Shown piece after piece: positions 7,150-61,000 of a DNA stretch of 64,000 nt (within the stretch, counting starts at the first letter, position 1; each line of letters starts with the position of its first letter). The notes under the pieces were generated by a model. That model ran no database searches. It was given only the letters and a program-made list of their open reading frames with translations, and was not told the origin of the DNA. Location of the stretch: assembly GCA_973895155.1 (NCBI GenBank), contig OZ316899.1:519573-583572 (forward strand), in the 5' to 3' direction. Both the position numbers and the translations under genes were made by a program. This DNA is from Marsupella aquatica (Eukaryota > Plantae > Marchantiophyta).

Positions 7150-8004
7150 CATCTCATCTATTATTTTTGCCAAACCATTTGACAAAATGGTGTTTTGTGA
7201 CTACCAGCTCTCGATGGCCAACCAACTGGCGGAACAGTGTTGTGTGGGAGACTTTTCTACACCATGCAACCATGATGAGACTTATAGTGTCCCATGCAAC
7301 CCTTTCTTCAAGACATAGTTGCGGGAGAACAGTGTCTTGTGGCAACCCTTTTGTGCAACCCAATCGCAAAAAAATGGTGTTCCATGGTAGACCCTTCTTC
7401 ACAATGAAGTTGCAGCGGAACAATGTTCTATGGCAGGCCTATCTCCAATATGCTCCCACAATGAATTAGTGTTTTTTGGAGATTGTTCTCCACTAGATGC
7501 ACTTGCAATGGAACAATGTTTCATGGGAGACTTTCACAACCTTCCATTGTGCAAAACACATTGCAATTCTTGGATAAAATTGTTGTTCACTAATTTGTCA
7601 TTACCTTGTGCCCTAGGTTGCCACCGCACCTCACCTTTCCACGGTGCATTACATTATCGCTGGCAGCACAATTCACCAACAACATTAACATCATTTCCTT
7701 TGCAGAAACGCACTATCCATCAACATAGAACTTGATGTAAATTAAACTTGCATCCTACAAAATCTGTTAAATACATTTAACTATTGGAGCTCCAATTACA
7801 ACAGCAAATAGTTGCACGTTTGAATGATTCCCTTTACAAAATAACAACAAATGCCCTTGGTTTGTGCACAATAGTTGACAACAACATCCGGTTGTCGATA
7901 GCAAATCACTCCTCCACAATGCTACAACCAAATCAATAGAGACTGCAATTCCAAAAATGCAAGTTATGAATTGCAACTCAAAGCCCACATTCACTCAAGC
8001 TTTC
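7150..8004 (-). pseudogene. Highly degenerate Ty3/gypsy pol remnant (RT-RNaseH connection region), continuing at ~16058-16330 across the inserted chromovirus
   Basis: Joining the two flanks gives NRLLRKLE*MWALSCNS*LAFLELQSLL, resembling L..LL.K...F.W...C..AF.EL..LL; many stops. Confidence 0.4.
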
Positions 8005-27749: not shown

Positions 27750-28915
27750 CAATGACCAGTTTTCCTCATCATCAAGTGGTTGCACCTTTGAACATTGTGG
27801 GATATGGAAGAGATGTACTGGGCTACAAAGGGCCCACAGTAATACTCTCGTGCAGTTGGCACGATTGATCTGGATGACTTCATCCAAGAGTTTGATACGT
27901 GGTGCGATATGCAGACATTGCATAACGTCACGTTGTTTACCCCTTTCATGGCATGGAATGGATTATTTCAGCATTTGGAAGGGCCACCCATGGATGACTA
28001 TCATGAGTTTTGGAAGGCTCATTTGGTGGAGATTAAGACATGGAGGTAGCATTGAGCGCCTAATTATGTGTCTATCATCTATGACACTAGTGCGACTGCC
28101 CAACCCATTGCCATAGTTGTTGCGTCTTCTAGCAACTTTAGCCAGAGTGGCACACCATCCACTAGTAGCACTCTAGCAGCATCCACCGCTACTCCTACTA
28201 GTGCGATTGTGTCAAGGACTAGAGCTACACCAACATTTAACCCTGTGGTAGAATTCTTTGAGGTGTTGAAGCAGAACCCTGATAAGTTGAAGGGTCTCCA
28301 AGAGTTTCAGCGCAAGATTGGAGAGAGTCTACGTGAGGCATACACTTATATGCGCAGATTGATCACTGTCACAAAGGGAGTGACAGAGGCCCAGACAGTC
28401 CAATTTTGGTATGCAATTCTGGACAAAGAATTGCGACGCAAAGTGAGAGATGTCACTCAACTTAGGGATGCAGATCCCACATTGACAGTTGTTTTTACAC
28501 TTGTTGAGCACATTGAGCTCAATATGGTGAATGAGAAAGTAGTGACTTCCGAATTTTCCAAGGAAGCACCAAAGGCTGCATCTACACCCACATCACAGCC
28601 TATTCACGTAAGAGCCAGAGGGAGAAGCCCACTCCACGGGAATCTACCAGTCAGAGACCTGTGTCATCCTATGTTGGACAACAATTAGGATGTTGGACCT
28701 GTGGTGGGGACCATGTGCAACAATATTGCCCTGATCATAGAGGGTCAGGAGGGGCCTCAACACCTGATCAGTGGCAGTGTGATCATTGTGGTGCTCTTGG
28801 ACACACCAAGGATAGGTGTTTCTCACTCCATCCTAAGTTACAAAAAGGAGGACAACGCACACATGATCAGGGAAGAGGAGGTAGAGGTGGTGGTCGTGGC
28901 CGAGGTATGCCACAT
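27750..28915 (+). pseudogene. gag: gag remnant of another LTR retroelement (D), interrupted by CACTA-1; resumes in frame at 38477
   Basis: DLDDFIQEFDTWCD..., FQRKIGESLREAY..., knuckles CWTCGGDHVQQYC and CDHCGALGHTKDRC; the reading frame continues ...GMPH|AGRQGGNVAL after removing the CACTA. Confidence 0.75.
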
Positions 28916-29725
28916 CACTAGTACATTTTAGGTACTTTTTCGATACTCAAAACATGCGTTTCTCAACGCGCCCGATACTAAACACAACGGAAAACGTCCG
29001 ATACTCCCAACTATGGAACTTCTGATACTACCAACATCGGACATTATTATCCGATAGGTTTTGTATTGAAAACGTTATCCAATACCCTGCATATCGGACA
29101 ATGTCCGAAACATCCTGTATCGCAAATTGAGAGCCGACATGTTTTTCAGACGTCCGATAATAATAGTATCAAAAGCTAATTCCGATAGGTTTGGTTTCGG
29201 ACATTTACCGATACAAGTCTTATCAAACATATTTTTGCAATACTAATTACAACGGAAATCATTTGCGAAGACTGAGGTATCAGTTACTGTCCGTTGAAAT
29301 TGCTATCGGACCCCTCCTCGGTTGCGGGCTTAAGCGTCCGATCTGTGGAGTATTGGATAGTGGCTTCCGATTGTTATAGTATCGGAATATCTGATCCTTG
29401 AGGATGGGAAGGGGTTTTTTGCTTTGGCAGTACTAATGTGTGTCCGATATGTTTCCGATGTTATTTGAATGGGATATGGTATGGGACTTTAGTGTTTTAC
29501 AATGTCTAGGTTGCATGGAATTAATGGATTTAGATATGGGGCATACTTTAAGCAATAGATATTTATACTGCATGAAATTGTGGACAATGAGAAAAATCGT
29601 AGAATACCGATAAAAAGATAGTGCCGGTAAAAATATACATGAAGATGGTGGGGTCTACAATTTATACTAACTCGTGGGGGGTATGTCTCTATCTTCCACT
29701 ACAACTACGTTGGGTCTCTCTTGGA

Positions 29726-32700
29726 CTATGGACCATGATTTGGGGATATACGGCATGACAATGGACCACTCGGGTCATTGGGATAGGGTAGGTAAAAGCA
29801 TTGCTCAAGGTGATGTGGGAAGGCAAAGGGATCTGAGGACCTCCAGTTGGAACTGATGACACTATTTGCGGATGTCTTCAAACGAGTAAAACCGCATGCA
29901 TCATCTTCACAAGTACAATTGTGGCCTACAAGATTCATCTTGAACCATTTGCACTTGAATACCACTTCCTCCAAAGTAGTATGTGCATGGTACTTCACTG
30001 TTAGGACCTCCTCAATCTTCCCATAATGGGTCACGGTGGAGCGAATGGGATTCATGTCTGACATGCTACTCTGGGAATCTTGGGTGAACCAACCCATCAC
30101 CCCACAATCCTGTGTAGCTGCCCTCTTCTCATCAAGTCATTCCACACGAAAATGTCTCCCCTGTGACCACATGGCAGTCCGAGTCGTGACTATAAGTAGT
30201 GGACCATGAACCAAGGTACAAAGTTTATCTGTCACGTTTGGGTAGTGTAATACACTCTCCCCGGTACCCACCAGGGCATCCACTTCTAACAACTTCTCCT
30301 TCATGTATGGGTGAAACTTGGGAAATAACCGTGGGCGTCGACTATTTTGCTTCTCCTCCTCATAAAATGTTGTCCACTCCCCGACAACCTCGGGTGAGTT
30401 ATACAACATAAATGTTTTGAGCTGTAAACACTCTGCTGAGCCTATGAGACGCTCTCCAGATGCCCCAGTGAGTCTATCATCCTCGTAGTCAGCCTCTCGT
30501 GCCGCCTCATCTATCCATCCCCTAGGAGCACTAGGATCTAGTGTGGCAACTATGTTTGTACAGTAAAACATACTCTCTGCTCCAAGATGACGCTCCGCAA
30601 TGCTACCTTCCACCCTAGCGCGATTAAAGACATATGACTTCATCACCCCCATATAACGCTCTACCCAATACATCCATCAACAATGTACTGGGCCTGCAAT
30701 TGCAACCTCGCGCACTAAATGTATGAGGAAATGAACCTGACCATCAAAGAATGAGGGAGGGAGTGCCTTCTCCAACTTGCAAACAACCTCTACTCCAAAT
30801 ATCTCCATAGCAGCAATGTCATCCTCTTGTACCTCCTTTTGACATACCCATCTTAAGAGCTTACCCAATGACCAAAGGGCATCACGAAGTTCCTCACTAC
30901 CCAATCCAATAATAGCAACTGGAAGAACATGTTCAAGCAACCGATGATAATCATGTGTCTTCAAGAAAGATGGCCATTTTGGAGAATCCTCCCCCCCAAA
31001 TGCCTTTCAAAGATTGGTACCATAACCTGTGGGAAACCTCATCAACCCAATACGTCTACAAAACTCAATGCGCTCTGCCCTTGTCAAAACCCAAGGAGGA
31101 TGGATGCTAGGGGGAGCACCAGGGGGGTCCAAAGATGGCCAAAAACCCAAAAGACCATGCATCCCCATCTCCTCACAACTTTCTCTCCAATTGTTATTTT
31201 TCTCCCCATATAGATGGTGAATCAATGATTTCCCCACATTCCCCTCAATGTGCATAGGGTCTAACAAGTGATTAATGGGCATATCTGACCAATATGGCAA
31301 TTGTGACAATGCAGACAAACGGGTCATGTCACATCTGAATAATGGTAATGGATCACTCGGATCCTGAACTCTCCCCCATACCTCTCTCCAATATGCTGGA
31401 TCCTTCCGCTGAGGTTGAGGAAGAATATCAGGTTGGCCCTCATCAGTATCATAAAGGAATGGATCACTCCTCCAAGGATGGTCTGGTGGAAGATATTTAG
31501 TATGACCAATGTAAACAATTTTTTGCAGAGTACTTGACTTGGGCCTGGCCACCCCCTCCAAATCGGGTCCACATGTAGAGCAAGCTCGATAGCCTGATGT
31601 TTGCAATCCAAAAACATATCCAAACCCTACCCAGTGCATAGAAAACACATTCATAAAATAAGGTTCATCAAGGCAAAAATCTGCATAATTGCAATTAAAT
31701 ACAAGGTTTAGGTACTAGAGGAAATAAGGGTTTACCATACCTGGTAAATCATGCATGGTCCACATAAGGATGGCCTTTAGAGTAAATACGCGGGATAAAC
31801 CTTCTGTGTTGTGACGTCCATCATAACAATCCACTCCTCTCCACAGTTGTATCAACTCATCAATCAATGGCTGCAAGTACACATCAATCTTTTTAACTTG
31901 CTTAGGACCCGGAATAATCATGGAGAGTAGTAGGTGACCTTTCTTCATGGCCATCCAAGGAGGGATGTTGTAGTTTGTCAACACTACTGGCCACACCGAA
32001 TATGGTTTGGCTTTTCTTGTCAATGCAAAAGGGCTGATACCGTCTGCTGCCAAACCTAGTCAAACATGTCGTGGGTCAATTTTGAACTCTCCCCATCTAT
32101 CCTCTACAAATTGATTGGCAGGAGAGTCAACCATCATCCGCATGGCACTAGAGGGTACAACCATATCAGAACGATTTTGTGAGTGCCATACCATCATCTC
32201 AGTCAACTCTGCACATCGGAATTGATGTCGCAATCGAGGGATAAGAGGAAAGTACCTCATAACCTTTTGCGGTACCTTCCCCGTCAACATGTCATCACGG
32301 TACCGTGGCTTCTGACATTTAGGACATGTAGTGGCATTTTCATGCTCACCCCTAAAAAGAATGCAATCATCCACACATGCATGTATCACCTCATACTTCA
32401 GGCCAATGACGTCAACACCCGTTTAGCCTCTTTCCAAGAGGCTAGTAATGCGTTGCCTACTGGCAAAATACGATCATGCAAGGTATGGAAAACATCATCC
32501 AAAAGTAGATTGCTTGCCCCATGTCTTTGCTGCAAGTTGAGCAACAACATTATTGATGAGAGCCGAGATAACCTACTCCCCTCGAATATGCGAGTACGGG
32601 CATGACGTTGCGCCTCCTCCCATTGCTTGTCTTGGGACCCCCTAGAAGGATGTGGATGACTAGTCCTTTCATGGGTTGAACCAATGTCCTCCAAACCAAT

Positions 32701-32907
32701 GTCATTGTGATCATCATAGAATTGGTCCATGAGCTCATCCATGGCCCTCTCCTCATCAAGATGGTCTTGGATAGGATCATCACCATCATGTCGTACCCCA
32801 TCCTCTTGCCTTTGCGGTTCATGCCCACGGTTGGCCACCATGGCCTCAACAAGGTGTTGTTGCATAGCTCGTGATATTACCCCAATATCAGGCGTTACAT
32901 ATTGATT
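29726..32907 (-). pseudogene. CACTA transposase (TnpD/Tnp2-type; Transposase_21 with downstream DUF4218/DUF4216-like regions), spliced and decayed
   Basis: IHACVDDCILF, YFPLIPRL, GLAADGISPF, WPVVLTNYNIPPW, PGPKQ, DLPG|FG intron, DPMHIEGNV, KTHDYH, PPSFFD, MYWVERYM. Confidence 0.9.
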
Positions 32908-33030
32908 CTATCATACAACATCAATTAATTAATCTCATCAACACATGCACTGTTGAACAACATCATTCTCATGTAAACATGTAAAATAAACTAACATATA
33001 TATATACATGTATGTAAGTCCAAGAAACTA

Positions 33031-33987
33031 TCATGGATGACAACGCAAGGACAATTTTGGTGCATCCCACTCATACTCACACAATAACTCCTCACCAGCT
33101 CTAATGGTCCTAACAGCTACTGTCATGATATGGTCGTCCATATGTTTCACAAAATATGGATGTCTAGGTGGACCAAACATTTGAATCCACTCTACATTAG
33201 CCTCCAAACCTCTATCTCTACCTGTGGTACTATTGATGTACCTTGCTAAATTACCATTCCGAATAGGGTCACCATCAATCATCCGGCAATGCCACGGCCT
33301 AGTGAAGTCCTCATCCGGGTCTGAGTCCATCCTCAATGCATACACACCCCAACTTGGGTGTTGACGCAACAAAATATTCCAACTCTTGGAGTTATATACA
33401 GCCCCAATGTAAGGAAAGAGGTGCTCTCCATCATAACCACGTCTCCATGGCTTTGGAGGGACCACAATATCCTCCAAAGCAAAAATACCATATCCTATAT
33501 CAGGACCAATAGAGGATGCCTTCACTATCCAAGGGCGACCCCATATCTGAACTGGTTCATCTGTAGGAATAAAATCTGGAAATTTGAAGAGACTTGGAGA
33601 AAAGTCCTTCAAAACTTCGGCAGCCCTACCAGTGAGATAGGATAGTCCAAACCTGCCCTCAACGCAAATATAATCTACGTTACCGGCTGGTCGATCACTA
33701 GTACCTAACACCTCCTCTTGGCTGTCTACCTGGTCCAGTGGTCCATACTGCCGTCTACGTCTACCAGATCGTGGTGGTGTACGTAGGACCCTAGTAGTCA
33801 CAACCTCGGGCCGAGAGACCGGTTCCCCCTCTACATGCTCATGTGTGGGCACGGGAGTGGGGATAGGAGCAGGTGGGCTAAGAGGCATCTGGGCAGGAGG
33901 AACTGCAAGCAACTCCCTAGCCCTTGCTAGAAACCCTTCCAACCACACAGCTTGAGGAACCAAAGGAGGTGGGGGCCTACGAGGCAC
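33031..33987 (-). CDS. SET-domain exon carried by CACTA-1 (open for 318 codons)
   Basis: SET motifs GYGIFALEDI, IDGDPIRNGNLARYINS and VAVRTIRAGEELLCEY; the ORF begins exactly at an AG acceptor (33988-33989). Confidence 0.85.
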   Translation of the reverse strand: MPRRPPPPLVPQAVWLEGFLARARELLAVPPAQMPLSPPAPIPTPVPTHEHVEGEPVSRPEVVTTRVLRTPPRSGRRRRQYGPLDQVDSQEEVLGTSDRPAGNVDYICVEGRFGLSYLTGRAAEVLKDFSPSLFKFPDFIPTDEPVQIWGRPWIVKASSIGPDIGYGIFALEDIVVPPKPWRRGYDGEHLFPYIGAVYNSKSWNILLRQHPSWGVYALRMDSDPDEDFTRPWHCRMIDGDPIRNGNLARYINSTTGRDRGLEANVEWIQMFGPPRHPYFVKHMDDHIMTVAVRTIRAGEELLCEYEWDAPKLSLRCHP

Positions 33988-34122
33988 CTATTTCAACACA
34001 CGTACAATGGTTTTACACAAATCAATAAATTAAGTAGTGGGATGTAAATGCAAGATAATTAAGCAATACCCTAAATTGGAATGCATATATGGAATGAATA
34101 GGGGACATAAACATATCTGTAC

Positions 34123-34353
34123 CTGGCTAGGCAAATACCCTGGCATATCACCCTCGTGGCAGCCATAGTTCTCGATGTGCTCACAAGTCTCCCACGCATG
34201 TCAAACCACAAGTCCCTTACATCTCACACACCAACAAGGTATGGGTCCTAGTGGAGCACGAGGACGATCTGGAGGAGGGGGTGGAGGAACCTCCCCCTTA
34301 GACGAGCTTGTGTCTGAGTCTGAATCTGACGTGGAACTATCAGAAGTAGACAT
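34123..34353 (-). pseudogene. First coding exon of the CACTA-1 SET/transposase locus (Ser-rich, Pro-rich, CWCVRC...C..H..YG motif); one in-frame TGA
   Basis: CAG|ATG TCT start; phase-0 donor CAG|GTACAG; a homologous fragment at 46051-46207 has CGA where this copy has TGA. Confidence 0.75.
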
Positions 34354-34671
34354 CTGCATGCATGAAGTACACTCATTCATGTAAGCTGCATAAAAGAAGA
34401 CAAGTGTTGGAGTATCAAAATAGAATTAATTAATGCATGACATACAAAAGTCCTGTTGTACCTCAATGATACCCGCGCTTTGCCAGCCTATTGTGTCGTA
34501 TTTTCTACACACAAGGTGTGGGACATCCAAAATCTCTGCATATGTGGGTGAGCATTTTGCTAATGAGCATACATAATCTGTAAGTGCGAAAGAGTGTAGG
34601 AAGAACACACCACATATAAAAAAATTCCAACATACAAATTAAGTGTAAATGATGCGGCTCGTGAAGCGGGG

Positions 34672-35376
34672 ACATCATACCTCCTGGATGCACGGTCTCA
34701 CACTATGCATAGTGCATTGTCCAAAACAAAACCTCCCTACCCCCTCACAAACATTGAACCACCCCTCCAAACGCAAGGTACTGTGCATCAAATCCAACAC
34801 AACCATTAGCCTAATATATGGAGGTTGAACCTTATCCTAAGAAAAGGTGTAACCTTATCCTAGTAAAACCCCATAACCCTAAGCCCATAAACCCCTCCAA
34901 AGAAATGATCCAAATAGCTTTCACCCAGAAATGGTTCGTACAAAAACTTCTTGTAGTATTTTGTCTATCATATATCATAGTATTGAGTTCCCATCACCAC
35001 AACCATCCCTAAACTTGCAAGGAACTTGCAAGAGGACATCATACCTCCTGGATGCACGGTTTCATGCATAGTGCATTGTCCAAAATCAAAACCTCCCTAC
35101 CCCCTCAAAAAAAGTTAACCACCCCTCCAAAAGCAAGGTACTACACATCAAATCCAAACACAAAGATTAGCCTAATGAAGGGGTTTAATATTATCCTAAC
35201 AAAAGGTATAATGTTATACTAATAAAACCTCTGCGTACACCCATAATCCCCTATAAAGAAATGAAACAAAAGGCTTTCACCCAAAAATGATTCATACAAA
35301 AAATTCTTGTAGTATTTTCTTGATCCTATATTACATATCATAGTATTGAGTTCCCATCACCACAACCACCCCTAAA
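34672..35376. repeat. Tandem duplication (~364-bp unit) upstream of the CACTA-1 first coding exon
   Basis: ACATCATACCTCCTGGATGCAC...CATCACCACAACC repeated at ~34672 and ~35036. Confidence 0.75.
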
Positions 35377-36128
35377 ACACCAAGACTCTATACACAATTG
35401 CATCATTAATTAGAGCCCAATATCTTAAGCATGCAAGACCATAGCTTATCAAAAACATTACATAGTCCGGTACAAACCCCAAAATTTGTTCTCCGCAACA
35501 AAGAAACTTGCAAGAGGTCCCTCTACATGGATGACACGTTCACTGTCCCGTTCACATATGTAGAGCCCTACAAAACTCGGATTCAAATATGAAAGCAAAT
35601 AATAACTCCAACCATTTGCCCTTACCCCATACAAAACCTAAATATCCTAAATTATACTCTAAACCCTCCAATACCATACCCAACCCAAATTCAAAACATT
35701 ATATTGGACCCCCTTTGGGAAAGCCAAGAGGTATCCGATATAACTTCATGAGGGGTCCGATGCAATAGGAAACGGGCCACACTTGGTAAATACACGGCCA
35801 CAAGAAAAGGACGAGGGGTCCGAAGCAGATAGTTTTGGAAAGTCCGATTGCGTGTCCGATACCTTTGGTTTCGCAAAGTCCTAAACAAAAAGAATCGGAA
35901 GCAGAAGGTTTTGTTTCGGAAAAATGAACCGATGCAGGTGCGAAGACCCGCGCGTCGGTCCTTGTTTCGCACTTGGTGTTTTTCAAATTTTTTGAAGCTG
36001 GATCAAGGAGGAGAGCTTGAAGGAGGAGGAGAGATGGAGGGGGCCGGGGGATCAGGTGGTGGGGGAGACCAAGGGGGATCAGGTGGTGGTGGAGATCAGG
36101 GGGACCGTCCCAGCCATACAATGAAGTT

Positions 36129-37634
36129 ATGAGGGACATTTTCGTGGCCAAGGCAGGGCTGAGTGTGGAGGACGCGGAGAGAGTAGTCCCACTCCTCCAA
36201 ACGCTGATTGATGCCTCTCGGCATGAGGCAGAGAAGACTGCTGCTGCAAGCATTGCAAGTGAGAAGGAGGCAAAGAAGAGGAAGATCGAAAGAGGCAAAG
36301 AGAGGCAAGAGGGATGCAGAGGAGACACTGTCTCCAAGAAAACGAGAGAAAAAGCTTTGAAAAGAAGCTAGGGCAATTGAGAAGGTGCGATTGGAGGAGC
36401 AGAGGTGAAAGGAGGCAGAGAGAGCTCTCAGGCCTGAGCTAGCTCTCAATTCGGGTGGTGGTCCATTGCCTAAGAGCTACCATCTATTCCGAAGCCAATT
36501 CAAGCAGGTGCTGAGGGCCAATTTGGGGCCACTGGATTACTGGGGCAAGAAGAAGGAGGAAGAGAGATTGAGAATCAGAGAGCAGGTGAAGGAACGGTTC
36601 AGGAATGGGGCCTACATTGAACGGGTCATCAATGGTTTAAGGTTACATTAGGGCTATGTAGGGTGGCTTGGTTTAGGGTAGGGCACGCTAATACTAGATT
36701 TGATATTAACCTGGCCTCTATGGTTTGGATCTTTAAATTTCAGGAGCGGGAGTATGGTCGCCCTATTGCGCCGTTGGAGAGGAATTTGGCAAAGATGGAT
36801 GGACCCCGCGCTCTAAAGCGCCACCTTGAGGATGAGTTGGGAGAGGTAAGTGTTCACCCTAGGGTGACATAATGTTTAAGGTTGTCATGAATTTGTTAGA
36901 GTTATGGTCGGGACCATTCATTCTAACCGCAATTAAACCCTATTGCGTAGGATGAGGAGGGGTCTGGGTCAGAGGAGTTGGACTCAAATTATGAGCAGGA
37001 TGCTGAGGCAGGGTTGGGGAGGGTGCCCACAGTCACCCCTACTCCTCAGGTCCGAGGTGTTGTTGCCCCATCTGGTGCCGTTGCCCCATCAACAGGGAGG
37101 GGTGGGTCACATGCTGTTGATGGTGTGGGCTCCCATCGCTCTGGAGCATCACGGGGTGCGGGGCCCAGGCACTCAGGGGGTAGTAGAGGTGATGGCATGG
37201 GACGAGGCCATCGCGTAGGAGTATCTGGTGCAGGTGGCCCTTCCCGACGAGGTAGTGGCGACGTGCCGGATGGTGGATCTAGAGGGCGCGCACCATCTCG
37301 TGAGTCTGGTGGGAGTACAGCACAACATGGGCCACCCACAAGATCTGTCGGTGCACCATCCCATCACTCTAGCAGGTCGGCGGGAGGAGCTGAGGCCTCC
37401 TTTCACTCTGCCGTGTCGGGGGTTGGTGGGACATCTACCTTGCCTGACCACCCTAGCGGTGCATCTAGTGGGTCAAGGTCTAGGCCTGCATCAGGCCAAC
37501 CCATGCCATCTGGTGAGCAGGTGGCTGCCACGGCTGTGGGCAGCCAAAGGGAGGAGGGCTCTCATGATGCTAGACCTGTACCCACCCTTCGTTCTCGCCC
37601 AAAGAAGAAGAAGGGACGCAACACACCTTTTTAG
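36129..37634 (+). pseudogene. Divergently oriented second gene of CACTA-1 (charged helical region, intron, Gly/Ser-rich tail ending in basic PKKKKGR)
   Basis: ORFs 36129-36371, 36466-36651, 36663-36872 and 36978-37634; donor GTAAGT near 36846 and acceptor near 36950; a positional counterpart exists in CACTA-2. Confidence 0.55.
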
Positions 37635-40252
37635 AGGTTAGTTGCATTTAGGTGGGTATCTAGTGCTAGACAGCTTTGATTAGACACTCACTAGGAGGTA
37701 CCTTGTATATAGCTAGTGTAGTCTCTAGTCAAAGCTCTCTTTAAATCTTCTATCGTGCCATCACGACCAGGAGGGGTCTACCCGGTAGGCCTAATCCATT
37801 TTGTACATATTGGGGTGATCCCCTTTTTGAATATGATATTTTGACCTCGTGTTTATAGCATTATCTTTGGTTCCTAATTGGTGTATGTCACCTTCAACCC
37901 CAAACCAATACCCAAACCCCCAAAAAACCACCCATGAAACCCTGTATTCCACCCCCAGAACATTTGATAATCCATTGCAAGTCCGTTACCATCCGTATTG
38001 GTAATATAGCAGTGTCCAATGCTGCTGCCTTCAAACTTTCCCATCCCCAACGCATTGGACCCCTCCTTCAAGGTTCCCATCTTAAATCTATCGGATAGTC
38101 CGATACAAAAAATAACACACTTTCCGTTTTGATAAATAACGCAATGTCCGATACATTCAATGACATATTGGATATGAAATCTATCGGACATCCCGATTTA
38201 AATAGGATCGGACATAGGAAATCGTCGTGTGCCGTCGCGTGTTAGTTATCCAATTTGTTTTACATTGGACCTAAAATATCCATAACACGTTACAATGGAA
38301 CTTCCGTTGCCCAAAATATCGGAAAGTCCGATGGAAGTCCGATGGTCGATATGCGATGGTTTGGGCATTGCAAAGTGCGTTGGGAATTGCATCGGATGAT
38401 AGAAATTTTTGCGTCAATTTTCCTGAAGGGATCCGATGTAAATCCTATCGAATAAAGGCCCAAAAATGTACTAGTGCATGCAGGGAGACAGGGAGGTAAT
38501 GTTGCTCTTACTATGATCACAGATCCTAAGGACGCTAAGATTGTTCAATTGAAGCAACAACTAGCTGCTATGGCTAGTTCTTAGGTGAGACCTACTTCTG
38601 GTGATGGGGCTTCTACATCCTATAGAGCTTCCACATCTTATGGGGTTGATGGAGATCTTGCCACCATGGGATTCATGTGTGGCATTGCACACATTGATGC
38701 ATCAGCAGCTTTGACGCGTGAGGCAACAAAAGCCCTTGAACCCAGAGGAGGAGTTGTGGAGTTGGATTCTCAAAGAGGGATGTTTGGCATCAAACCAGGC
38801 ATCAAACAAAGCTTTCCAAGTCTTTTACATTGTCATAGACAATTAAGACTGCCTCTAAGAACCCGATTTGGACAAACCCTGGTGTGGGTAAGTTGGCATA
38901 ATCACATGATGTTGCAACAGGGATGACAAGTACCTTGTTGGGGGCAGCTACCACCATAGTGCGCACCCCATTATTTTCAGTGATAGATATGTTGACATTT
39001 GGGGTTGGTCCAACTAATGTGTCGTATGATAGGAAGAACAAAAAGTAGTAAACCCTAAACGGAATTTGATCCCTTAAAGAACAGATTCAAAGTAAATTGA
39101 ATGATTTAACAAATTTGGATGGTTTAGAGCTCTTGCTCTAAAACTTTCAATCTCAGACAAAGAATAAAATTAACAAAACACAAGGAAAAGATAACTCTTG
39201 AGTTATAAATCCAAAAGGAAGAAGAAATCTATGATTAGATTGGTTTTAACATGTTAATGTCACTCCTTCAGAAAGGACTATGGACTCAATATAGACAAAA
39301 TTAAACCTATCAAATCAGATTCTTTGTTTTCTACTGGAATCATAAAGATGAAAAAAATAAAAGGATTCTCTTGCTCACCAAATCCACAATACATTTCTGG
39401 TTGATTTATTGAGATATGTATTAAAATGCCGTTAACATGGTTTGATTGTCGACAATACACAATTTAAATCAAACTCTAATACATATGCCAAAGTAAATCA
39501 ACGGTACTATGATACTCTGAAGATGGAATTTTGCTCCTTCAATTCAATCATCTATTCTCAAATTAGCTGACGAATCTTGACACAACAAGCAAGCTTAGCA
39601 GTGAATTTGATAAGAATCTCAAAAGGTTGTGATTAAAAATTCAGTCACTAGAAGGAATCTCCTGAATTCATTCACAATTGATAACACATGCTTGACTTCC
39701 ATACAAGACATCCTTGTTAAAATGGAAGGTGGAAAACTTATTCAGAATCTCTTTCTAAATAAAGTGTGTCCCCCCAAAGATGGATAAACTGAGGGCTCTT
39801 ATAGGTGTAAACTTCTAATAAAGGAAATTGAAGGGGTGTAACTTTTCAAATCTCAAATATCCAAAAGGGTAGTCTAAAAAAAGATGGAGTGTGAAAAATG
39901 CAGTGGATGCTTCAGAAAGCATCATGTTTGAGGCGGAAGCTTTACAAAGCGTCGATGTTTTTGGTAAAACAAATAAACAGTGACTTTATCAGAATTTTAA
40001 CTTCTAAACTAAAAGTCAGAATGAGGTGAAACTTTTCTAAGGTACTCTACTACATATAATCTCTATGCTAGCAAAGTTTCAAACTTGTCTAAGAGCTCTA
40101 TGTGCTTCAAATAAATTGGTAAAAGTGTCGCAATGCTATAACAAGGGAAAACCAATTTTTTTCTCAGTGTCACAAGTTTAGTGGACGTGAGGCGTCCAAA
40201 ATACAAAGGAACTTTTGTGGACGCTGCAAAAAGTGTCCAAAATTTGCATGTC

Positions 40253-42765
40253 TGAAGGTTCGTGCTACACATGTGACGCCATGGGCCATCAAAGTAAGGA
40301 TTGCCCCTCAATTACGCGACCATACATGGACCCCAGTTGAAAATTACGCAGGCTGAAGGTTCAAGCTACACATGTGGCGCCATGGGCCATCAAAGTAAGG
40401 ACTGCCCCTCGAAGGGGGGCAAGCTGAGCGGAGATGGAGGGCAGAAGGGCATTAAGGTAAGTATCGCTCTAACCGAATCCTTCGTAGTTGATGAGGTCCT
40501 TGTAGGGGATGTTCCTGCCGGAGAGAAGGTGTTATGGCGAGAGAAGATACCTAAGGTTAAGACAATGGATCATGAAAAGCTTATTTTTGTGAATGTTACT
40601 TCTGACGGTAATATGGGTGTTGCTTTGGTGGATATAGGCGCGATCGCTTGCTTCATAAGTGGGTAGGCGGCGACACGTCTTGGGGTGGATGTCCAAGAGT
40701 TGCTACAACCATTAGTGTGCAATTTTGCCAACGACACGAAAGGGATAGTGTCGAGAGTGGTGCATAGACTTTGGGTAGAGATCATAGGCAAACAACAAAA
40801 TTTTGTTAGTCAAGAGGTGTTCTATGTTCTAGACGGTTTAGCCGTAGACTTCATTTTGTCTACCATTATCTCAGAAAGCACAATGTTACCTTGAAACCGG
40901 GGGAGGAAGTGCTCCATTTTCCCAATAAGGGCGGTGAGCCCATCTTTGTACCCAAAATTACCAAAAATAAAGAAAGATTTCTTAAAGTAAGTAAAGTGTA
41001 TCGGCGAAGCAATGGTGGAAAGACTTCAAGGGTGGACAAGAATGTTTCTTCTTTCATCTCCACCCAGTTAAGGAGGCTGCTTTGCAATTGAAGGTTAAGT
41101 CAACTAAGGTTGGGCCCGACTACAGTCCTGAAATTCTAGAGGAATTCAATGACATGCTCTCGCAAAAGCTACCTAAAGGTTTACCCCCGCGGAGAGAAGT
41201 GGATCACCAAGTTGAGTTGGAGCCAGGTTTGGCTCCTCAGACTAAAGCTCCTTACCGTCTAAACATGAATGAACGAATGATGTTGAAGAACGCCTTGGAA
41301 GAGTTGATCGACCAAGGGTTCATTCGTCTTGGTAAGAGTCCTTATGGGGCGCCTGCGCTGTTTGTGTCCAAAAGGGATGGTACTTTGAGATTGTGCACAG
41401 ATTATTGGGTCCTCAATAAGCAAACGGTAAAGAATAAGTACCCGTTACTTCATATGGATGACCTCTTTGATTGCCTCTCCGGGGCTAAGGAATTTTTCTA
41501 AGGTGGACTTGTGATCTGGGTATTACCAGATCCGCATGGCTAAGGGAGACGAGTATAAGACCACAATGCGCACAAGGTTTGGATCCTATGAATTTTTGGA
41601 TATGCCGTTGGGGCTGTGTAATGCAACCGCAACGTTCATGAAGATGATGAATACCATCTTTCATGACTTGTTGGACCAAGGAGTGGTCATATTTATTGAC
41701 GACATCCTAATCTACTCAAAAATGTTGGAGGAACATGAGCAGTTGCTTAGAGAAGTGTTCTCTCACCTTCGTAAGGCTCATCTCTTTGCTAAACCTAGCA
41801 ATTGCAAGTTTGCGATGAACGAGATACAGTTCCTTGGCCATACCTTTACCCCGGAGAGGATAACGCCTAGTCAGAACAAGCTTAAGGAGATCAAAGAATG
41901 AGAGCGTTTGTCCAATGTAAGGCAAGTTAGAGCCTTCATAGGATTTACAAGGTTCTATCGGAGATACATGAAAGACTATGCAAGCATTGCAAGGCCCTAA
42001 ACACGCTAACGTTGAAAAACAAAGTGTTTGTGTGGACACAAGATTGTGAGTTAGCATTCCTAGAACTAAGCGGCTAATGATAATGTCGTCGGTTCTAAAG
42101 TTACCTGCGATGGGGAAGCCGTTTGAGATTTGGACAAACACAAGTGATTATGCCATTGGGCCTGTCTTCACCATGATGGGCGTCCTATGGCCTTTGAGTC
42201 ATGTAAGTTGGAAAATAATTGTATCACACCGGAAAGGGAAATGTATGCACTGATCTATGCGTTGAAGAAGTGGGAGATTTACCTTAAGAATGGTCCCAAA
42301 GTGGTAATACACACAAATAGCTTGCCGACCGGGTACTTAAATTCTAAGCCAAGGCTGAACCCCAAGGAAATGCGCTGGCAGATGTTCTTGGCGGATTTTG
42401 ATTTCGAAGGCTATCACGTTTCAGGGAAGACAAACACGACAGCTGATGCGTTATTGCATAAGGACCATCATCGTGTCAATGAGATCACGATGCTCAAAAC
42501 CGAGTGGCCAAAGGTTCTGGCCAAGGTGTATGGGGATGACAGGTTAGCTAAGGAATGGCAAAACAATGGGGGTAGCCTAGGCAATGTAAGGCACATTTTG
42601 TTGGGGTTGGATACCGCGCATAATGTCCAATTATGGCGATACAAGTAGAGGTGTGTGTACATCCCAAAGTCCCTAAGGTTAGAGGTTCTACAAAAGTACC
42701 ACGACTTGCCCTGGGGAGGGCATGGCAGACAAGCTGCTACGTATCGTAGCATGTCGCGAGATGTG
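40253..42765 (+). pseudogene. pol: Internal fragment of a family-C-like chromovirus (knuckle-PR-RT-RH-start of IN), decayed
   Basis: Colinear with ~11065-13490; the knuckle segment is tandemly duplicated (~40253-40305 and ~40352-40410). Confidence 0.88.
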
Positions 42766-45953: not shown

Positions 45954-46050
45954 CAACGGCCCTGGCCCAAATCACCAAAGCCAAAGCCCAGACAGCCTTC
46001 GCCACACAAGCCGGAGCCGGGAAGGATGTGGAGATCGCGCGGCTTGCTTT

Positions 46051-46207
46051 TGATAGTTCCACATTGGATACAGAGTCAGACACAAGCTTGTCTGAGGAAG
46101 AGGTTCCTCCACCCCCTCCTCCAGACCCTCCTCGTGCTCGGCCACTAGGACCCATACCTTGTTGGTGTGTGAGATGTAAGGGACTTGTGGTCCGACATGC
46201 CTGGGAG
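46051..46207 (+). pseudogene. Orphan fragment of the CACTA-1-type first exon
   Basis: DSST..SDTS..EEEVPPPPPPD...PLGPIPCWCVRCKGLVVRHAWE, near-identical to ~34195-34345 reversed. Confidence 0.8.
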
Positions 46208-53839: not shown

Positions 53840-55918
53840 CAAGCAAAGCACATGAGAGCTTCAACATTCATGGGATTCCATTCACTTGCATTGCCCCACT
53901 GGGAAACTAAGTTGGAAAGAGAGTACAAAGGGGAGGAGGCACTCACAAAGTGAGCCTTGGGGCCGGGGAGCCCGCCTTGACCCAACCTGTGGATTGGATT
54001 GGGGGTGGCCTTTACTCGCTTGGCTGCATCAATGAATCGCTTGGGTGGTCTTCCTTCTTGATCAACCACCTTCTGTTCGAGTCCCTTCAGGTCATGGTCA
54101 GGGGAGAGCTTCCCGGCCTCCTTTGCCTTCAAGGCTCCAGCCAATGCATCCTTCCACTGATCTAACTCACCAGCTGCTTTGATCTGCACCTCAATCTTGT
54201 AAATGCATTCCAAATGTCCTCGGTGAAATGGAGGGGTCTACGCAAATTCCTATACGATCTCAAGTCTTTCAGGTGGGCTTTGATCTTCATCTTGTCATGG
54301 TATCTCATTTGAGACATAAAATTTGAAATCTTGTCTCCCAGCCATTGCTCATCTATGTCAGGTCCGTTGCAAAATGCACCCTTGATCTGATTGATCACCC
54401 TCTTTCATTTTGCCTTCTCAACCTTTCCCCACTGCATGCCTCGTGAGAAATTGCTTGTGATGATCTGCTTGATTGTGCTCTTAGCCCCTACATAGGCTAG
54501 CTCTGTTGGAGTTCCACTCGTCTCCAAGGCAATGAATGGCAACTTTTTCCTTGCTTCCTCTTTTTGACGTTGCTCATCCCTCTGTTTTTGAATTGCATCC
54601 CTCTCCTCTTTTCTCTTCTTTTTTTCAAGGGCTTGAGGAGAAGCAACTCCCGATTTATCCCTCTCCTCTCTCTTCCTTTTTTTCTCTCTAGCTTTCTCCT
54701 CAGCTGCGGCCCTTTCCTCCTCCCCTCTAGTAGCCTACCCTGCTAGAATTCTTGTCTGCAGAATCTGCCCTAGAATGCCACTCAACAAGGCAAGCCCTGC
54801 TGGAGTATTCAAATTCACTTCGCCCAATTGTGCAGCATTGAGATGTTGGGCCACTAAATCCGCGAATGCATTCCCCTCCTTCTCTTGATTCGTCCCATTG
54901 CCACTACCACTAGCACCACTAGCACCATGTTGTCCACTTCCCTCACCACCAGCCATAGCCTTCCGCCTCTCAAGTCTCTTTCTTCTCCTTGCGCGCAGCT
55001 ACACTACCCTCTCGCCTTCTCCGCTCGTTCTCTTGACAAAACATAGGAATGAGCTCAATGCGAGCTCCCGCCGACACTTATGGCATTCAAAAAAAAGGGT
55101 TAATTGAGGGTTTACTTTGGGTTAGGGTTCACTAAGGGTTTAGGGTTAGGGTCCAGGGTAGGGGTTTGGGTTAGGTTTTCATTTAGGGTATGCTTTCATT
55201 TTTCCATTAACATAAAGGGTTGGAACACTCTAGGACTACTTGCACGACACTTCCGCATCTTTTTCAAAGTTTTGGCTAATGCACATGCATTGCAAGAGCC
55301 CGGGCATCTGAAAGGTACAACTTGTTTTAAAGCCTTTTGGTTTATATTGGAACTATTGAAGGTTACAGTCTATCATCCCCTCGGGGGTTTCACTTCCACA
55401 AAAATGGCATATCACGTGCGACGAAGGATAGGGTCATTTTATTGGTTCTAAGGGAAGACTTAAGAATTTTTGTAGAAGAACAATAGGGTCTTTTAAATTT
55501 AATTTTGAGACTTATAAGAATATTAGGGTATTTTTAATCCAATTTTTAGAATATTCCAAGAATATTCCAACTTTATAGGGGTTAAAAAATAAATTTTTTT
55601 CTTACATTTGAGGGGCTCTGAGGCCTAAAAACGTCGCAGGCGAGGTCCCCATATAGTGAGACCCCCGAGATCATCCCTTTCTCTACTTGATCATGAGTCA
55701 TGGTTTATAATGTATTATATATTTGCAGATTTTTCCCTCCTACTTCTAGATTGGGTTCATCAAGTTTGAGCCTGAAGACCTATAGGCATTGCTGAGCCCG
55801 AGTCTCAAAAACGGTAATATTCATTTCACTTCAGTTTAAAGTGTACTTAGGGTTTAAAAAGGATGGTTTTGGGATTTTTTACTAACTCCGGATTCCAAAC
55901 ATTTGTTGCATTTGCCAG

Positions 55919-56131
55919 ATGTCTTCATCCTCTACAACTTCCACCACATCGGACTCCTCCTCCTCCTGAGCCTGAACCAAGTGTACGTCGACCTAGTGGT
56001 CCGCCACGTCAACTATGTGGTTGTAAAAATGTGTGGGGATGATTGTCCAGAAGTCATATGTATGTGCGGACCACATTGTAAGATATGGACAACATCGAGG
56101 TCTTACACTGGGAGCCTCTTCATCCCATATG
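55919..56131 (+). pseudogene. First coding exon of the CACTA-2 SET/transposase locus
   Basis: CAG|ATG TCT start; Ser-rich, PPPP, CGCK(K)CVG...VCADHIVRYG motif (two small frameshifts); phase-0 donor ATG|GTGAG. Confidence 0.7.
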
Positions 56132-56239
56132 GTGAGTTGTAAAGTTACCTTATTTGTTTCTAATTTTATAAATCTACCTAGCATGACTTAGGTTTTGGGA
56201 AGTTGTTCACATTTACTTTGTTGGATTTTTTTCATATAG

Positions 56240-57054
56240 GTATCCACTAGGCCTACACCCACGGCACCAACACCCTATGTTCCCTCACAAGGAGTTCTAG
56301 ATGCTATAGGCTTGGCCCTTTCACAAGCTTTTTGTCTAGTTGCAACAGGGCAAGGAAGTGTTGGGACAGTTGAGGGTGTTGGTATTGTTACAAGAGGGAA
56401 AAAAGATCTAAAAGGAATCCGAGAGGGGAAGTTGATCAGTATACCTGTAGGGTTGATGGTAGGTGGGGACCTTGTATGTTCACAGGGAAATGTGTGCCTC
56501 TCATAAAGGATTGGAATCCTGATTGCCTTGGTTTGCCATGTGATATAACCTATGGTGAGGAGATAGAGGTTTGGGGAAGGCGTTGGGTTGTCAAAAGCTC
56601 TACACTAGGGGAGAGACATGGGTATGGAGTTTTTTCTTGTGAGGACATCATTGTGGATGATATGGGTGGAAAAGGGCGGTCTCCAGATGGACCAACATTG
56701 TTCCCATATGGTGGACCCATTTACAAGAGGAGACATTGGAACATGATCCTTGTACAACACCCTGAGTGGAAGACTTATGCATTGGATATGGATACTTTTG
56801 ATGGCTGCACTAGAAAGTATAGTGAACAACGTATAATTGATGGAGATCCCATCCGTAGTGGGAATATAGCCGGTTTCATAAATAGTACTGTGGGGTCTCG
56901 GCCCAAGCGTAGGCAAAATTGTGAGTGGGTTTTTGTTGATGGTCCCCCTCCAGCACCATATGGACAGAGATATCATCATGACCATTGTCTGGTTGTGGCT
57001 ACAAGGACCATTAAGGCAGGAGAGGAGTTGTTTACTCATTATGCGTGGGATTAG
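56240..57054 (+). CDS. SET-domain exon of CACTA-2 (SET core 56476-57054 open; one frameshift in the linker)
   Basis: GYGVFSCEDI, IDGDPIRSGNIAGFINS and VATRTIKAGEELFTHY; acceptor AG at 56238-56239. Confidence 0.82.
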
Positions 57055-57212: not shown

Positions 57213-58094
57213 AATGTGCGACCTAGTCAAGATATGTTGCCAAGGAGGTTGAGAGCTACATATGATGAAATGGGCATGCCACGAGACAGAGAAACATCAT
57301 CAACAGATTCCTCATCCAGTGACAATGACATTGAAGGTTCTGATGAAGGGGCACCTAGGACAGATTATGAGGTCATGCAGGACCAGGAGACAGCCATGGA
57401 TGACTTCATGACAGATTGGTTTGGTGTGGACGTTGATGGTGAAGGACGTGGACCACCCAATGAAGGAGCTCCCCCACCAAATGCTGCACATGACCCCCAG
57501 CCTCAACATACACCATAAGGTCAACAACAATGGGAAGAAGCGGAGGCACATGCTAGAACACCTATTTATGGGGGTGCTCGCTTGAATAGACTCTCGATCT
57601 GCCATCTTGGCATTGATGAACCTTCAGGCAAAACACAAGGCAAGCAATGCCCTACTATCGGATTTGTTTGCAATTTGTCATGACCTCATGTTACCCAGTG
57701 ACAATGTATTGCCAGGAACTTGGAAGGAGGCAAAGAGAGTTTTATCATCCATTGGTATGGAATATCATATCATTCATGCTTGTGTGAATGACTACATCCT
57801 ATATCATGAGACCAATGCCAACAGGACTGAGTGTCCAATTTGTCATGAGCCTCGATACGAGGCCAACATGTTGACCTCAAAGGTGCCCAGGAAAGTTGTC
57901 TGTCGGTTTTCCATTATTCCTCGATTGTTGCACATGTATCGATGTTCTGACTTGGCAGAATTGATGGTATGGCATAAGACACATCGATCAGAGGCCGGTG
58001 TCATGCGGTTGCCAGTTGACTCCCCTGCTCACAAGCATGTGGAGTCACAATGGCCAGAGTTTGCCAATGACCCTCGTCATGTGAGGTTGGGGTT
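57213..58094 (+). pseudogene. CACTA-2 transposase, N-terminal part (truncated by retroelement insertion)
   Basis: Starts at an AG acceptor (57211-57212); LMNLQAKH, IIHACVND, FSIIPRL, VDSPAHKHV and DPRHVRLG align with the CACTA-1 transposase. Confidence 0.88.
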
Positions 58095-61000
58095 TGTGGT
58101 GCGTCCCGTGGCTCCGTAAACCCAAGAAACCCCCCAGCTCAAGCCGATTCCCGCAGGTTTCGCGCTTGGCGAGGCCGTTTCCGCGGCTTAGCGGCATGGG
58201 ACGCTGCTAACCTTCTACTATTACTATTAACATTTTACACACATATACTGGACAGATCCTTCATCGGGTCATGAGATACGTAGCTGGCCTAATCTAGGCC
58301 TTCCCTCGTCTTCCCCTCCGTCTTGTTAGGTATGTTTGGATTCCGCCGCCGGAATGATCCCCAATAGGCTTGGTTAAGCCGCTAAGACCTCTCTCAGCTC
58401 GACACATCCAACTCTCACTCCCCTGCTTACTTTCCTTCCTTCTGGTTGATGTGGGCACTCTTCACACAAGTTAATGCGACACACAAATAGCAAAATGACT
58501 CATTCTGACTGAGTCATACCATGCACTTGCCATACAAACAGTACATCTCATACACAAGCTCTGCGAACTAAGCCGTGAGGCCAACTCTATTCAGCTCTTA
58601 GGCATGAGGAAACATGAATATACACAAGGGTCACTGTATGACTAACCGAGAGCTTCTCGTACTACTTGATCCCAACCCGGCTAGTGCAAACTAAAAACTT
58701 GCTAAAGAAGAGGCCCTGAGCTCCCCGCTGCCCAGGTACTTATCCTGGTAGTGGATCCGCCTAATTCTTTGCAGCGTAAGCCTAATCTACCTAACAGTAA
58801 TCTACTTGCCCGGATCTACCTATGTACAGCAAGGCAGGAGCACAAGTGTTGCTCCTACCAGTGGAACCACAATCCCACTAAGCTAAGTGTCAGGGTCCTG
58901 ATCCTAATCCTAAACTTGGAGATCAGCGCCCACCCTGCCCACTCACGCCTCCTCCCTCCACGTCCGCCCTTCCTAAAAGGAACGACGCCCTTGCACCGTC
59001 ACGACACCGGTGGTGGATCCTCAATGGACGCCCCCAACGCTTCCTCCTCAGCCACTGTCGTAGGTTCGTTTTCTGACAGATTACCTGCCCTTGACTGAGT
59101 CAACTATCCATCGGCCTGACTGGGTCCACCATCGGCGTCGGCATCGGCTCGGGAATCATTCTCGGCTACGGCCTCAGCCTCGACTATGGTCTCCCCGGCC
59201 TGCTCAAGAGGCGGATCTGGGATACCGGCCTCATTACTGAGTAGTTCGGCTTGGGCCGCACCACCCCCACCTGTGATGATAGCGGGATCTATTGCCGTAT
59301 TCATGCCGGAGGATGGTGCTGGGTCTACTTCCTTGGTCACCACGACTTGTGGAGTCGGATTACTCCTTGACCCTGAAGGTTTTCGCTTCTTCTTCTTTTC
59401 TGGTTCGGCAGCTGGTCCCTTCCCCTTCTCACTTACTTCCGGCACTGGTGCAGGTGGCGCGGCTTTTTCTTCGGCCAGTACCACTCCTGGTAACTTGGTT
59501 GCCCCAATTGGAGTTGGGCCTGATGAAGACAAGCACTTAAATACTGCGGCTTGTTTCTTCAGCCGCTCCGTTTGGTTGTCGGCCCGTCGCTGGAGGTTCT
59601 CCATCTTCCTCGTGATTTCCTCCAACTCCTCCTGGGTCTCATCCAGGTCCTTGCGCGCCTCCTCTAGTTCCTTCTGGGCTTCCTCCCGTTCTTTTTTCAA
59701 GGTAGTCCTCTCCTCCCGGGTTGCTCTTAGCTCCTTGTCGAGCTCTGCAATGATGACAGACTCCATCTGGTTCATCTTGGCGTAAGTCTGATCGAGCATC
59801 TCGTCCTTCTCCCTTAGGTCGGCCTTGAAGCTGGCCGTCAGGGATGCAAGCTCCTGCTACAGCGCCATAATCCCTTGATAGGATTTTCCTAACTCGGCCT
59901 CCTTCTGCTCAAGGGCTCCGCGGATTTTCTCGAGCTCCCCCTTCAACGCCCATTCCTTTCTTTGGGTCTCCGCCATGGCCCGGCTGTTGGCTGTTATGTG
60001 GGCCTCCTCTGTATTCCTCAGCTCTCGCTTCCACTTCTCCCTCTCTTTGATCGTATCGGCCAACTCTCCCTGTGTCTGAGTCAGTTTATCCTTGATATTC
60101 TGATTATCAGCCTGCGCGGTGTCCAACTGCCCCTGCATGATGTTCAGCTCATGCCGTTTAATCCGCAGTTCATCTTGGGCTTTCTTGGCCGCCCTTAGAT
60201 CTTCAATCTCGGCTTCCATCCTCCTAAGCCGCCGAATGACCTCGTCCTTCTTGCTTCTCTCTAAAGCCACCGCTTCTTCTAATTGGTGCTTCTCCAACTG
60301 CTCCCTATGGAAAAAGGGTCCTACCTCCAACTCCTCTCCAAAGATGCCGAGCGCAAGTTCCCCACACATCTCACCATACTCCATGGCTCTATTCTTAGCG
60401 TAGGTGGAGTAAGTAGAAGTGATCGGCATCGCCCATCACGGCCTCTGCTCCCAAGCCGTCTTGCGGATCTCTTCAATCGTGGCTAGAGGTTTGCTTCCTT
60501 TTTCGGCTAGCCGCCTGATGTCCTCCGGCCAATCTCCTCCTGGTAAATCCTTTTCCCTAGCCAGGGCTGCCTCCTCTTCCTGCCTGATTCGCTCCTGAAA
60601 TTCCTGCACCGTCTGTTTTATGCCGTCAAAGCTCGGGGGAGCAACATCTGGTGGGGGAGACTCAGGGCTACTCTGCTGGTTGGGGTCCCCTCGTACTACC
60701 CTTGGAAGTGTGGGGACAAACCGGCCACAGGTCCTTACTCCTGGAACATGATGGTCCGACCCATAGCCGGAGTTATCATGGCTGCAGTCCTCCATTGCCT
60801 CCTCTATTTCTTGGACGTCCGGCTTCTCCCTCTCCTCTTCGTCGGTAGGAGCTTCAGGCAATTCTGCCTCAGATTCAGAGCTTGAGACTCCCACATACAT
60901 TCGAACACCTGGCTTGGATTCCGTCCTGATTCTCTCCTCGTCTCCAGCAAAGGGGTTTTCTCTTGTGAGCCGGTGTAGGCCTACCTCTGGAGTGGTGTTC

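Follow-up and report, generated by a model that had tools for sequence, protein, structure and literature searches.

In the genome of the liverwort Marsupella aquatica, a stretch of 64,000 nucleotides (GenBank assembly GCA_973895155.1, contig OZ316899.1, positions 519,573 to 583,572 of the forward strand; hereafter the window) holds a complete CACTA transposon and a fragment of a second, diverged one, and in both of them an exon for a SET-domain protein stands directly upstream of the transposase gene. In this study, we have analysed these two copies together with their relatives in other liverworts. Our comparisons support the view that the SET exon is a cargo retained over the long term under selection, and not the product of a one-off capture. 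We give a probability of about 0.7 to the reading that the elements form a SET-carrying liverwort CACTA clade with an alternatively spliced exon 1, in which the SET protein would be an active and selected lysine methyltransferase that aids the element.

Position and evolution of the SET exon

Both SET open reading frames (ORFs) lie at the coordinates and on the strands given by the original prediction, which had been made from the letters of the window alone. The first (33031-33987, minus strand) encodes 318 amino acids and the second (56476-57054, plus strand) 192, and with the Pfam SET profile (PF00856) they score 29.6 and 32.1 bits, over a gathering cut-off of 22.4. BLASTP aligns them with 86 identities in 193 positions (45%, E 2e-55), slightly more than the roughly 75 in about 160 that had been counted by hand, and the identities are indeed concentrated in the SET motifs quoted at that time. 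Pieces of a Transposase_21 gene (tnp2, TnpD-type) follow immediately downstream on the same strand in both cases, as predicted, and a translated self-comparison finds the two copies collinear, with SET first and then the N-terminal part of the transposase. At the DNA level, the self-comparison finds no similarity left between them. Neither SET exon contains a stop codon, while the transposases of the same copies hold several.

The family was collected by word-based and exhaustive profile searches. Among 1.84 billion representatives, the exhaustive search returned 131 clusters (at 50% identity) with E<=1e-3, including 39 with E<=1e-30, and none of the 30 clusters looked up was a canonical host SET. 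As judged by these profiles, the liverwort SET family is a discrete clade that does not reach the canonical SETs at E<=1e-3. Its members come from at least three liverwort genomes; the species named are Calypogeia fissa and Riccia sorocarpa, which represent the two main liverwort classes. The annotation of Riccia and Calypogeia labels these ORFs as host 'SET domain-containing proteins', and host chromatin gene counts are therefore inflated in both. The only named match outside the liverworts, P0124 of Ginkgo biloba (415 amino acids, with a complete Pfam SET domain), is weak (E 6e-5). A fungal, Plavaka-like origin was considered and rejected, the homologues coming from liverworts and the transposase being of the land-plant CACTA type. 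A plant-type Transposase_21 protein, P0218, is filed under an Enterobacter cloacae complex assembly and is most likely a contamination of that bacterial record.

Flanking DNA was fetched for ten relatives of the family. In nine of them (L001, L002, L005, L006, L011, L015, L016, L017 and L018) a CACTA transposase comes after the SET ORF, and in all eight of these with upstream DNA read (all except L005) a Cys/His exon comes before it. Together with the two window copies, this makes 11 loci with SET immediately before the transposase; they have diverged to 36-73% identity. The exception is L014 (10001-11512), where the Calypogeia fissa protein P0070 (503 amino acids, single exon) has no transposase within 10 kb. 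P0070 has a Cys-rich N-terminus, is flanked by host genes (mL59-like and FtsH) and has a second copy, P0147; it could have been domesticated, be carried by a different element or be related to the progenitor.

SET and transposase have diverged together. Their pairwise identities across seven loci correlate with a Pearson r of 0.93 (the pairs not being independent), and the supported nodes of their maximum-likelihood trees agree, with a clade of copy 1, L001 and L011 and with L006 as the most distant; disagreement is confined to weakly supported nodes. After exclusion of saturated pairs (dS above about 1.5), the ratio of nonsynonymous to synonymous substitution rates (dN/dS, Nei-Gojobori) of the SET region is 0.22-0.26, with bootstrap upper limits of at most 0.42, and that of the faster, disordered N-terminal part is 0.43-0.51. 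The original prediction had named this ratio as a check, and the values are not near 1. They are also upper bounds, because part of the divergence accrued in dead copies. Four sequencing runs give the SET exon and the transposase k-mer depths of one order of magnitude, which speaks against a SET exon that is rare in the family, with the caveat that depth does not measure copy number.

The SET protein and the proposed transcription unit

The SET exon encodes a disordered, Pro-rich N-terminal part followed by a beta extension and the SET domain (residues ~108-308). An AlphaFold2 model of residues 100-318, built on a 42-sequence alignment, has a mean predicted local distance difference test score (pLDDT) of 89.5 and a predicted template modelling score (pTM) of 0.85. 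Foldseek finds 340 chains of the Protein Data Bank (PDB) at E<=1e-3, and the best 50 listed are all SET-domain proteins, nearly all of them lysine methyltransferases. The matches listed include SETD8/KMT5A, LegAS4, MLL1-3, NSD, G9a and ATXR5 (probability 1.0 for SETD8, LegAS4 and MLL1), and the best listed have template modelling (TM) scores by target of 0.57-0.73 at 19-24% identity. The AlphaFold Database and the viral library (BFVD) likewise return SET proteins, with no single closest subfamily. The SET assignment proposed from the letters of the ORFs is therefore upheld both by the profile and by the modelled fold. By sequence, the effector LegAS4 of Legionella is the best solved relative, its SET domain being matched over its full length with an E of 9e-6. 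LegAS4 itself has histone methyltransferase activity.

GxG, Y198, Y216, DG, N246, N252-S253, N264 and E300...Y305 are conserved in 37 or more of the 42 aligned family members, and the best conserved positions, including D238-G239 and G298-x-E300...Y305, are those important in SET enzymes. G165 is found in 41/42 sequences of the family alignment, G167 in 42/42, E300 in 41/41 and Y305 in 39/41, and these residues are present in both window copies. The family motif Y-I-N-S-x...P-N keeps the Asn, the Ser and the P-N of the canonical N-H-S/C-x-x-P-N; its His is absent, and LegAS4 has N-F-S. What sets the liverwort family apart is an N-terminal beta extension with conserved P137, W149 and R151.

Based on the model and on these residues, the SET protein is probably active as a methyltransferase. 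One alternative would be a catalytically inert SET-like module, kept by selection for binding or scaffolding, with histone tails, the transposase or a complex of host methyltransferases as conceivable partners. It would agree with the family-wide absence of the NHS His and of the post-SET Cys cluster, with the remoteness of the family from characterised enzymes (most PDB SETs are matched through the C-terminal motif only) and with the presence among the fold matches of Arabidopsis SUVR1, named 'probable inactive' in UniProt. However, the key S-adenosylmethionine (AdoMet)-binding and catalytic residues (GxG, Y198, N252, N264, E300 and Y305) are precisely what the family conserves best, and the closest solved relative, LegAS4, likewise has N-F-S instead of N-H-S, so that we regard an inert module as unlikely.

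The Cys/His module upstream of SET, encoded by exon 1, is likely a remote homologue of the Transpos_assoc domain (PF13963). Exon 1 peptides from three diverged lineages each match this profile only, in the same register, with 14-15 bits, which lies under the curated cut-off of 27.7 and below a formal profile match. A profile of nine exon 1 peptides aligned by hhalign with twelve genuine Transpos_assoc N-termini gives an E of 2.5e-5 and a probability of 75% over 35 columns, and an Atlas search with exon 1 returned noise only (scores 0.5-0.6). The genuine domains come from angiosperm proteins, 36-45% identical over the N-terminal part of the transposase, and from further assembly contigs. In fern and angiosperm relatives, PF13963 heads the transposase itself; the liverwort transposase ORFs are devoid of it. 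Fern and angiosperm homologues of the transposase are 41-55% identical.

The exon 1 donor (CAG|GT at 34123/34122 in element 1) and both acceptors, that of the SET exon and that of the transposase, are in phase 0. In 7 of 10 loci, the transposase frame starts directly behind a TAG with a T-rich stretch before it, and a conserved N-Q-F/Y-V...R-A lies upstream of its first Met, with no Met at that place in L011. This layout makes it likely that one transcript is alternatively spliced, from exon 1 either to the SET exon or to the transposase. The four sequencing runs gave fragmented, very deep contigs that resemble genomic DNA of a high-copy repeat, and the joints seen in related contigs are variants between copies, not introns.

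It could also be proposed that SET is spliced in frame onto the transposase, in the manner of SETMAR, to give a single polypeptide of which SET is a domain. The Riccia protein P0058 (773 amino acids) does combine SET and Transposase_21, joined just before the SET stop to the usual transposase acceptor, and L001 has a phase-0 GTGAGG donor-like site just before its SET stop. This site is nevertheless not conserved in element 1, and the SET domain of P0058 lacks its N-terminal half, so that the model may be an artefact of annotation over a decayed copy. Furthermore, all eight SET ORFs with the C-terminus read end in a stop a few codons past the catalytic Tyr, an AT-rich stretch of ~120-290 nt comes after that stop in the loci with the spacer read, and the Calypogeia and Riccia models P0001, P0014 and P0029 terminate at it. 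These features make a fusion protein improbable. Far less probable still, and largely refuted, is a passenger or a host gene (a captured host fragment, or a gene with CACTA neighbours) that plays no role in the element: CACTA elements of plants often capture genes and P0070 does lie among host genes, but the SET exon is found within the terminal inverted repeats (TIRs) and target-site duplication (TSD) of element 1 and at the same position in the 11 diverged loci, co-diverges with the transposase under purifying selection, stays free of stops where the window transposases do not, and has no close host homologue in the 1.84 billion representatives, all of which speaks for the long-term retention suggested by the original prediction and against a recent host capture.

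The reading that we favour is thus a clade of three-gene CACTA elements of the En/Spm type, with a divergent gene that we call ORF-U and with SET and transposase in a single transcription unit, where the SET exon would have its seat between the ancestral N-terminal Transpos_assoc module of the transposase and the transposase body. In a first isoform, exon 1 would be spliced to the SET exon and the product, a zinc finger (ZnF)-SET protein, would end at the SET stop. In a second, exon 1 would be spliced past the SET exon, giving a ZnF-transposase. The SET protein would be an AdoMet-dependent lysine methyltransferase, kept by selection through its benefit to the element, and it might act on histones of the element or its vicinity, on the transposase or on a host factor, and in this way tune silencing or transposition. 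Within this reading, the methyltransferase that modulates silencing, as put forward by the original prediction, is a reasonable hypothesis.

Several observations weigh against this reading. In the protein, the canonical NHS His is replaced (N-S-T stands in its place), the post-SET Zn/Cys cluster is absent and sequence similarity to characterised SETs is only 15-25%, too low to assign an activity or a substrate. The scores that tie exon 1 to Transpos_assoc are weak (14-15 bits; hhalign probability 75%), and both window copies are mutated. The four runs are genomic-DNA-like, so that expression and the splice isoforms are predictions, and depth taken from contigs does not give a copy number. Finally, the Riccia models P0058 and P0081 join SET and transposase in one protein, hinting at further isoforms or at faulty annotation.

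A more specific version, which we put forward as doubtful, would be a self-targeted writer. The shared zinc-finger exon would deliver the methyltransferase to the subterminal repeats of the element or to the partners of the transposase, and the lysine-methyl mark would keep promoter or ends accessible or switch the transposase on or off. Such a device would have been retained from a time when the two main liverwort classes had not yet separated.

Anatomy and decay of the window copies

The features of both copies are collected in the table. Element 1 has the CACTA...TAGTG terminal inverted repeats, and its exact terminal 13-mer has only these two occurrences within the window. The sequence GTCCGAWA has 11 matches in the window against 2.4 expected, and 10 of the 11 fall in the two subterminal ends of the element. 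The original prediction of two CACTA elements therefore holds for copy 1, with its inverted repeats and 3-bp duplication; copy 2 is a fragment, whose CACTA termini were searched for and not found.

Table. Features of elements 1 and 2, isolated fragment, and ORF-U of related loci (window coordinates unless a locus is named)
Feature	Position	Strand	Basis or remark
Element 1, complete CACTA transposon, 9,561 bp	28916..38476	-	TIR pair; SET and transposase genes on minus strand
TSD, CAT	28913..28915 (left), 38477-38479 (right)		read directly on both flanks
TIR, transposase-distal end, begins CACTAGTACATTTT	28916..28938	+	23 nt, 87% complementary; first 14 nt identical
TIR, opposite end, begins CACTAGTACATTTT	38454..38476	-	inverted-repeat pair with 28916-28938
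Subterminal cluster of 7 GTCCGAWA motifs, both orientations	28996..29449		motif count
Subterminal cluster of 3 GTCCGATA motifs, other end	38098..38189		motif count
Element 1 exon 1: Ser/Asp/Pro-rich start, then C-x-C-x2-C...H Cys/His module (Transpos_assoc-like)	34123..34380	-	homologous open exons in L001, L011
Element 1 intron, GT...AG, phase 0, 135 nt, exon 1 to SET exon	33988..34122	-	junction shared with Calypogeia gene model P0001 and L011
Element 1 SET exon, 318 codons and stop, phase-0 start at 33987	33031..33987	-	no internal stop
AT-rich spacer (~120 nt), SET stop to transposase exon	32908..33030	-	ends in acceptor-like TAG, 32910-32908
Element 1 transposase, Transposase_21 and DUF4218, TnpD-type, nearly full length, defective	29720..32907	-	Pfam; L002 alignment
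Two tandem ~345-bp copies, 82% identical, between divergent ORF-U and exon 1	34670..35376		self-comparison
Element 1 ORF-U, frameshifted	35848..37634	+	divergent from SET/transposase unit, upstream of exon 1
Element 2 SET exon	56392..57054	+	ORF 56476-57054; homology from 56392; no internal stop
Element 2 exon 1 (Cys/His module), frameshifted	55950..56131	+	approximate, by-eye comparison with L002 exon 1; ORFs 55863-56042, 56033-56191
Element 2 transposase, N-terminal part only (~230 codons), 2 stops	57213..58116	+	homology ends ~58116
Element 2 ORF-U remnant, divergent from SET/transposase unit	54285..54956	-	translated comparison
Isolated 161-bp exon 1 fragment, 89% identical to element 1	46047..46207	+	self-comparison
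ORF-U of Calypogeia locus L001, annotated 532-aa (amino acid) gene	6473-8530	-	homology
ORF-U of L011	5' edge of contig		homology
ORF-U of L017	matching place	matching	too diverged for tblastn

Element 1 is a dead copy. An in-frame TGA interrupts exon 1 at 34203-34201, where related contigs of the four runs and the fragment at 46047-46207 have a sense codon (G at 34203). Its transposase can be aligned almost end to end with an uninterrupted relative (L002) and contains five stops within the aligned stretches, together with a frameshift near 32401-32407; many related contigs have an extra G after 32407. The region that holds the 345-bp tandem copies is likely the promoter region.

The related contigs align across both exons and break off or are replaced inside the intron between exon 1 and SET (joints 33998-34120; loose ends 34001 and 34120), and this intron is therefore diverging much faster than the exons on its two sides. 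Between 29500 and 35400, the differences from the related contigs of run X1 (A>G 61 and T>C 48 vs C>T 29 and G>A 27) are mostly A/T in element 1 where the contigs have G/C, as would be expected if methylated cytosines had been deaminated in a silenced copy.

Element 2 is a 5' fragment and a defective relic, bounded by inverted pieces resembling long terminal repeats (LTRs) at ~53.2-53.4 kb and 58.6-58.8 kb, and it is flanked on both sides by long, related blocks in inverted orientation. The isolated exon 1 fragment adjoins a large inverted-repeat complex (43107-45953), the arms of which are 83-92% complementary. The surroundings are rich in LTR-retrotransposon material, at 42187-42648 (an RT_RNaseH ORF), 49230-53839 and 59104-62645.

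ORF-U has a Gly-rich part, followed by a charged, coiled-coil-like stretch and after that by a conserved P-K-S-Y-x-L-F...W...K-K-E-E block. Pfam gives no match for it or for the other ORFs in the 5' half of element 1. A language-model search (Atlas) offers a weak lead, treated as a lead only, to Transposase_24 of the TnpA family, and ORF-U may be TnpA-like. We had considered that the SET protein had replaced TnpA, as nothing follows the transposase; this idea was dropped because the conserved, divergent ORF-U lies upstream.

Comparison with known systems

To our knowledge, few transposons carry genes that act on chromatin, and in land plants VANC of the VANDAL elements is the only worked-out case. 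Our data add a SET gene, conserved, selected and apparently catalytic, that would be standard equipment of a large liverwort CACTA clade. Its architecture is that of a cargo exon built into the expression logic of the element, between a zinc-finger exon and the body of the transposase. Should the enzyme be active, it would give direct access to the question of how a DNA transposon acts on histone methylation or takes advantage of it, and Marchantia is genetically tractable. If, in addition, the self-targeting version were true, a land-plant DNA transposon would have an in-built, self-targeted epigenetic writer. In Marchantia and related lineages, transposons are marked by histone methylation including H3K27me3, according to published work (10.1101/2022.10.24.513474).

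With maize En/Spm and the other plant CACTA elements, the liverwort elements share CACTA termini, a 3-bp TSD, short subterminal repeats and a TnpD-type transposase. In En/Spm, TnpA and TnpD arise by alternative splicing, and a single promoter with alternatively spliced products that have exon 1 in common is what we infer for the liverwort elements also. They differ from plant CACTA elements by the SET exon inserted between the Transpos_assoc-like exon and the remainder of the transposase, and from En/Spm by a TnpA-like candidate, ORF-U, that is a separate, divergent gene without a Pfam match.

Among proteins, the nearest likeness is to SET domains of the LegAS4/RomA, SETD8/KMT5A and MLL types, with LegAS4 as the best sequence match (including its N-x-S) and the others among the best fold matches. 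Identity is nevertheless only 19-24%, and the liverwort family has its own beta extension and forms a discrete clade of 131 clusters. In primate SETMAR, too, a SET domain and a DDE-type (mariner) transposase stand side by side. SETMAR, however, is a host gene that captured a transposase, whereas in liverworts the mobile element carries the SET gene, most likely as a separate protein. The parallel with VANC of the Arabidopsis VANDAL (Mutator) elements is one of presumed function only, in that an accessory protein encoded by the element is taken to work on the epigenetic state of that same element; VANC is not a SET enzyme, acts through sequence-specific DNA hypomethylation and has no homology to the liverwort protein.

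A parallel is found in red-algal Plavaka elements of the EnSpm superfamily, in which PAG2, a SET domain fused to an N6-adenine DNA methylase, is a long-retained accessory gene belonging to a three-gene cassette with a ParB/2OG-oxygenase protein (bioRxiv 10.1101/2025.02.11.637652). Both are DNA transposons of one superfamily with a SET accessory gene retained over the long term. The liverwort SET differs by standing alone (in the window ORFs and in ten longer family members, Pfam finds only SET and no N6-adenine methylase domain), by lying inside the transposase transcription unit and by belonging to a canonical land-plant CACTA lineage; the two SETs were compared by description. SET cargo is also on record in HarbingerS, as a SET histone methyltransferase gene, and in Phytophthora MuDR elements (Repbase Reports, as cited in PMC12730594), and a Helitron-captured SET is likewise cited (PMC12730594 and the Bostrychia preprint). 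These too are DNA transposons with a SET protein as standard cargo, from other superfamilies and hosts, and compared here by description only.

The original prediction knew of no SET gene as standard cargo of plant CACTA elements. In full-text literature searches, which left most subscription journals and Repbase outside, neither land-plant CACTA elements nor liverwort transposons were reported to carry a SET gene. The statement nevertheless has to be qualified, because SET cargo has already been described in HarbingerS, MuDR, Helitrons and Plavaka. The principle is therefore not new; what is new is the liverwort lineage, the domain make-up of the protein and its embedding in the transcription unit of the transposase.

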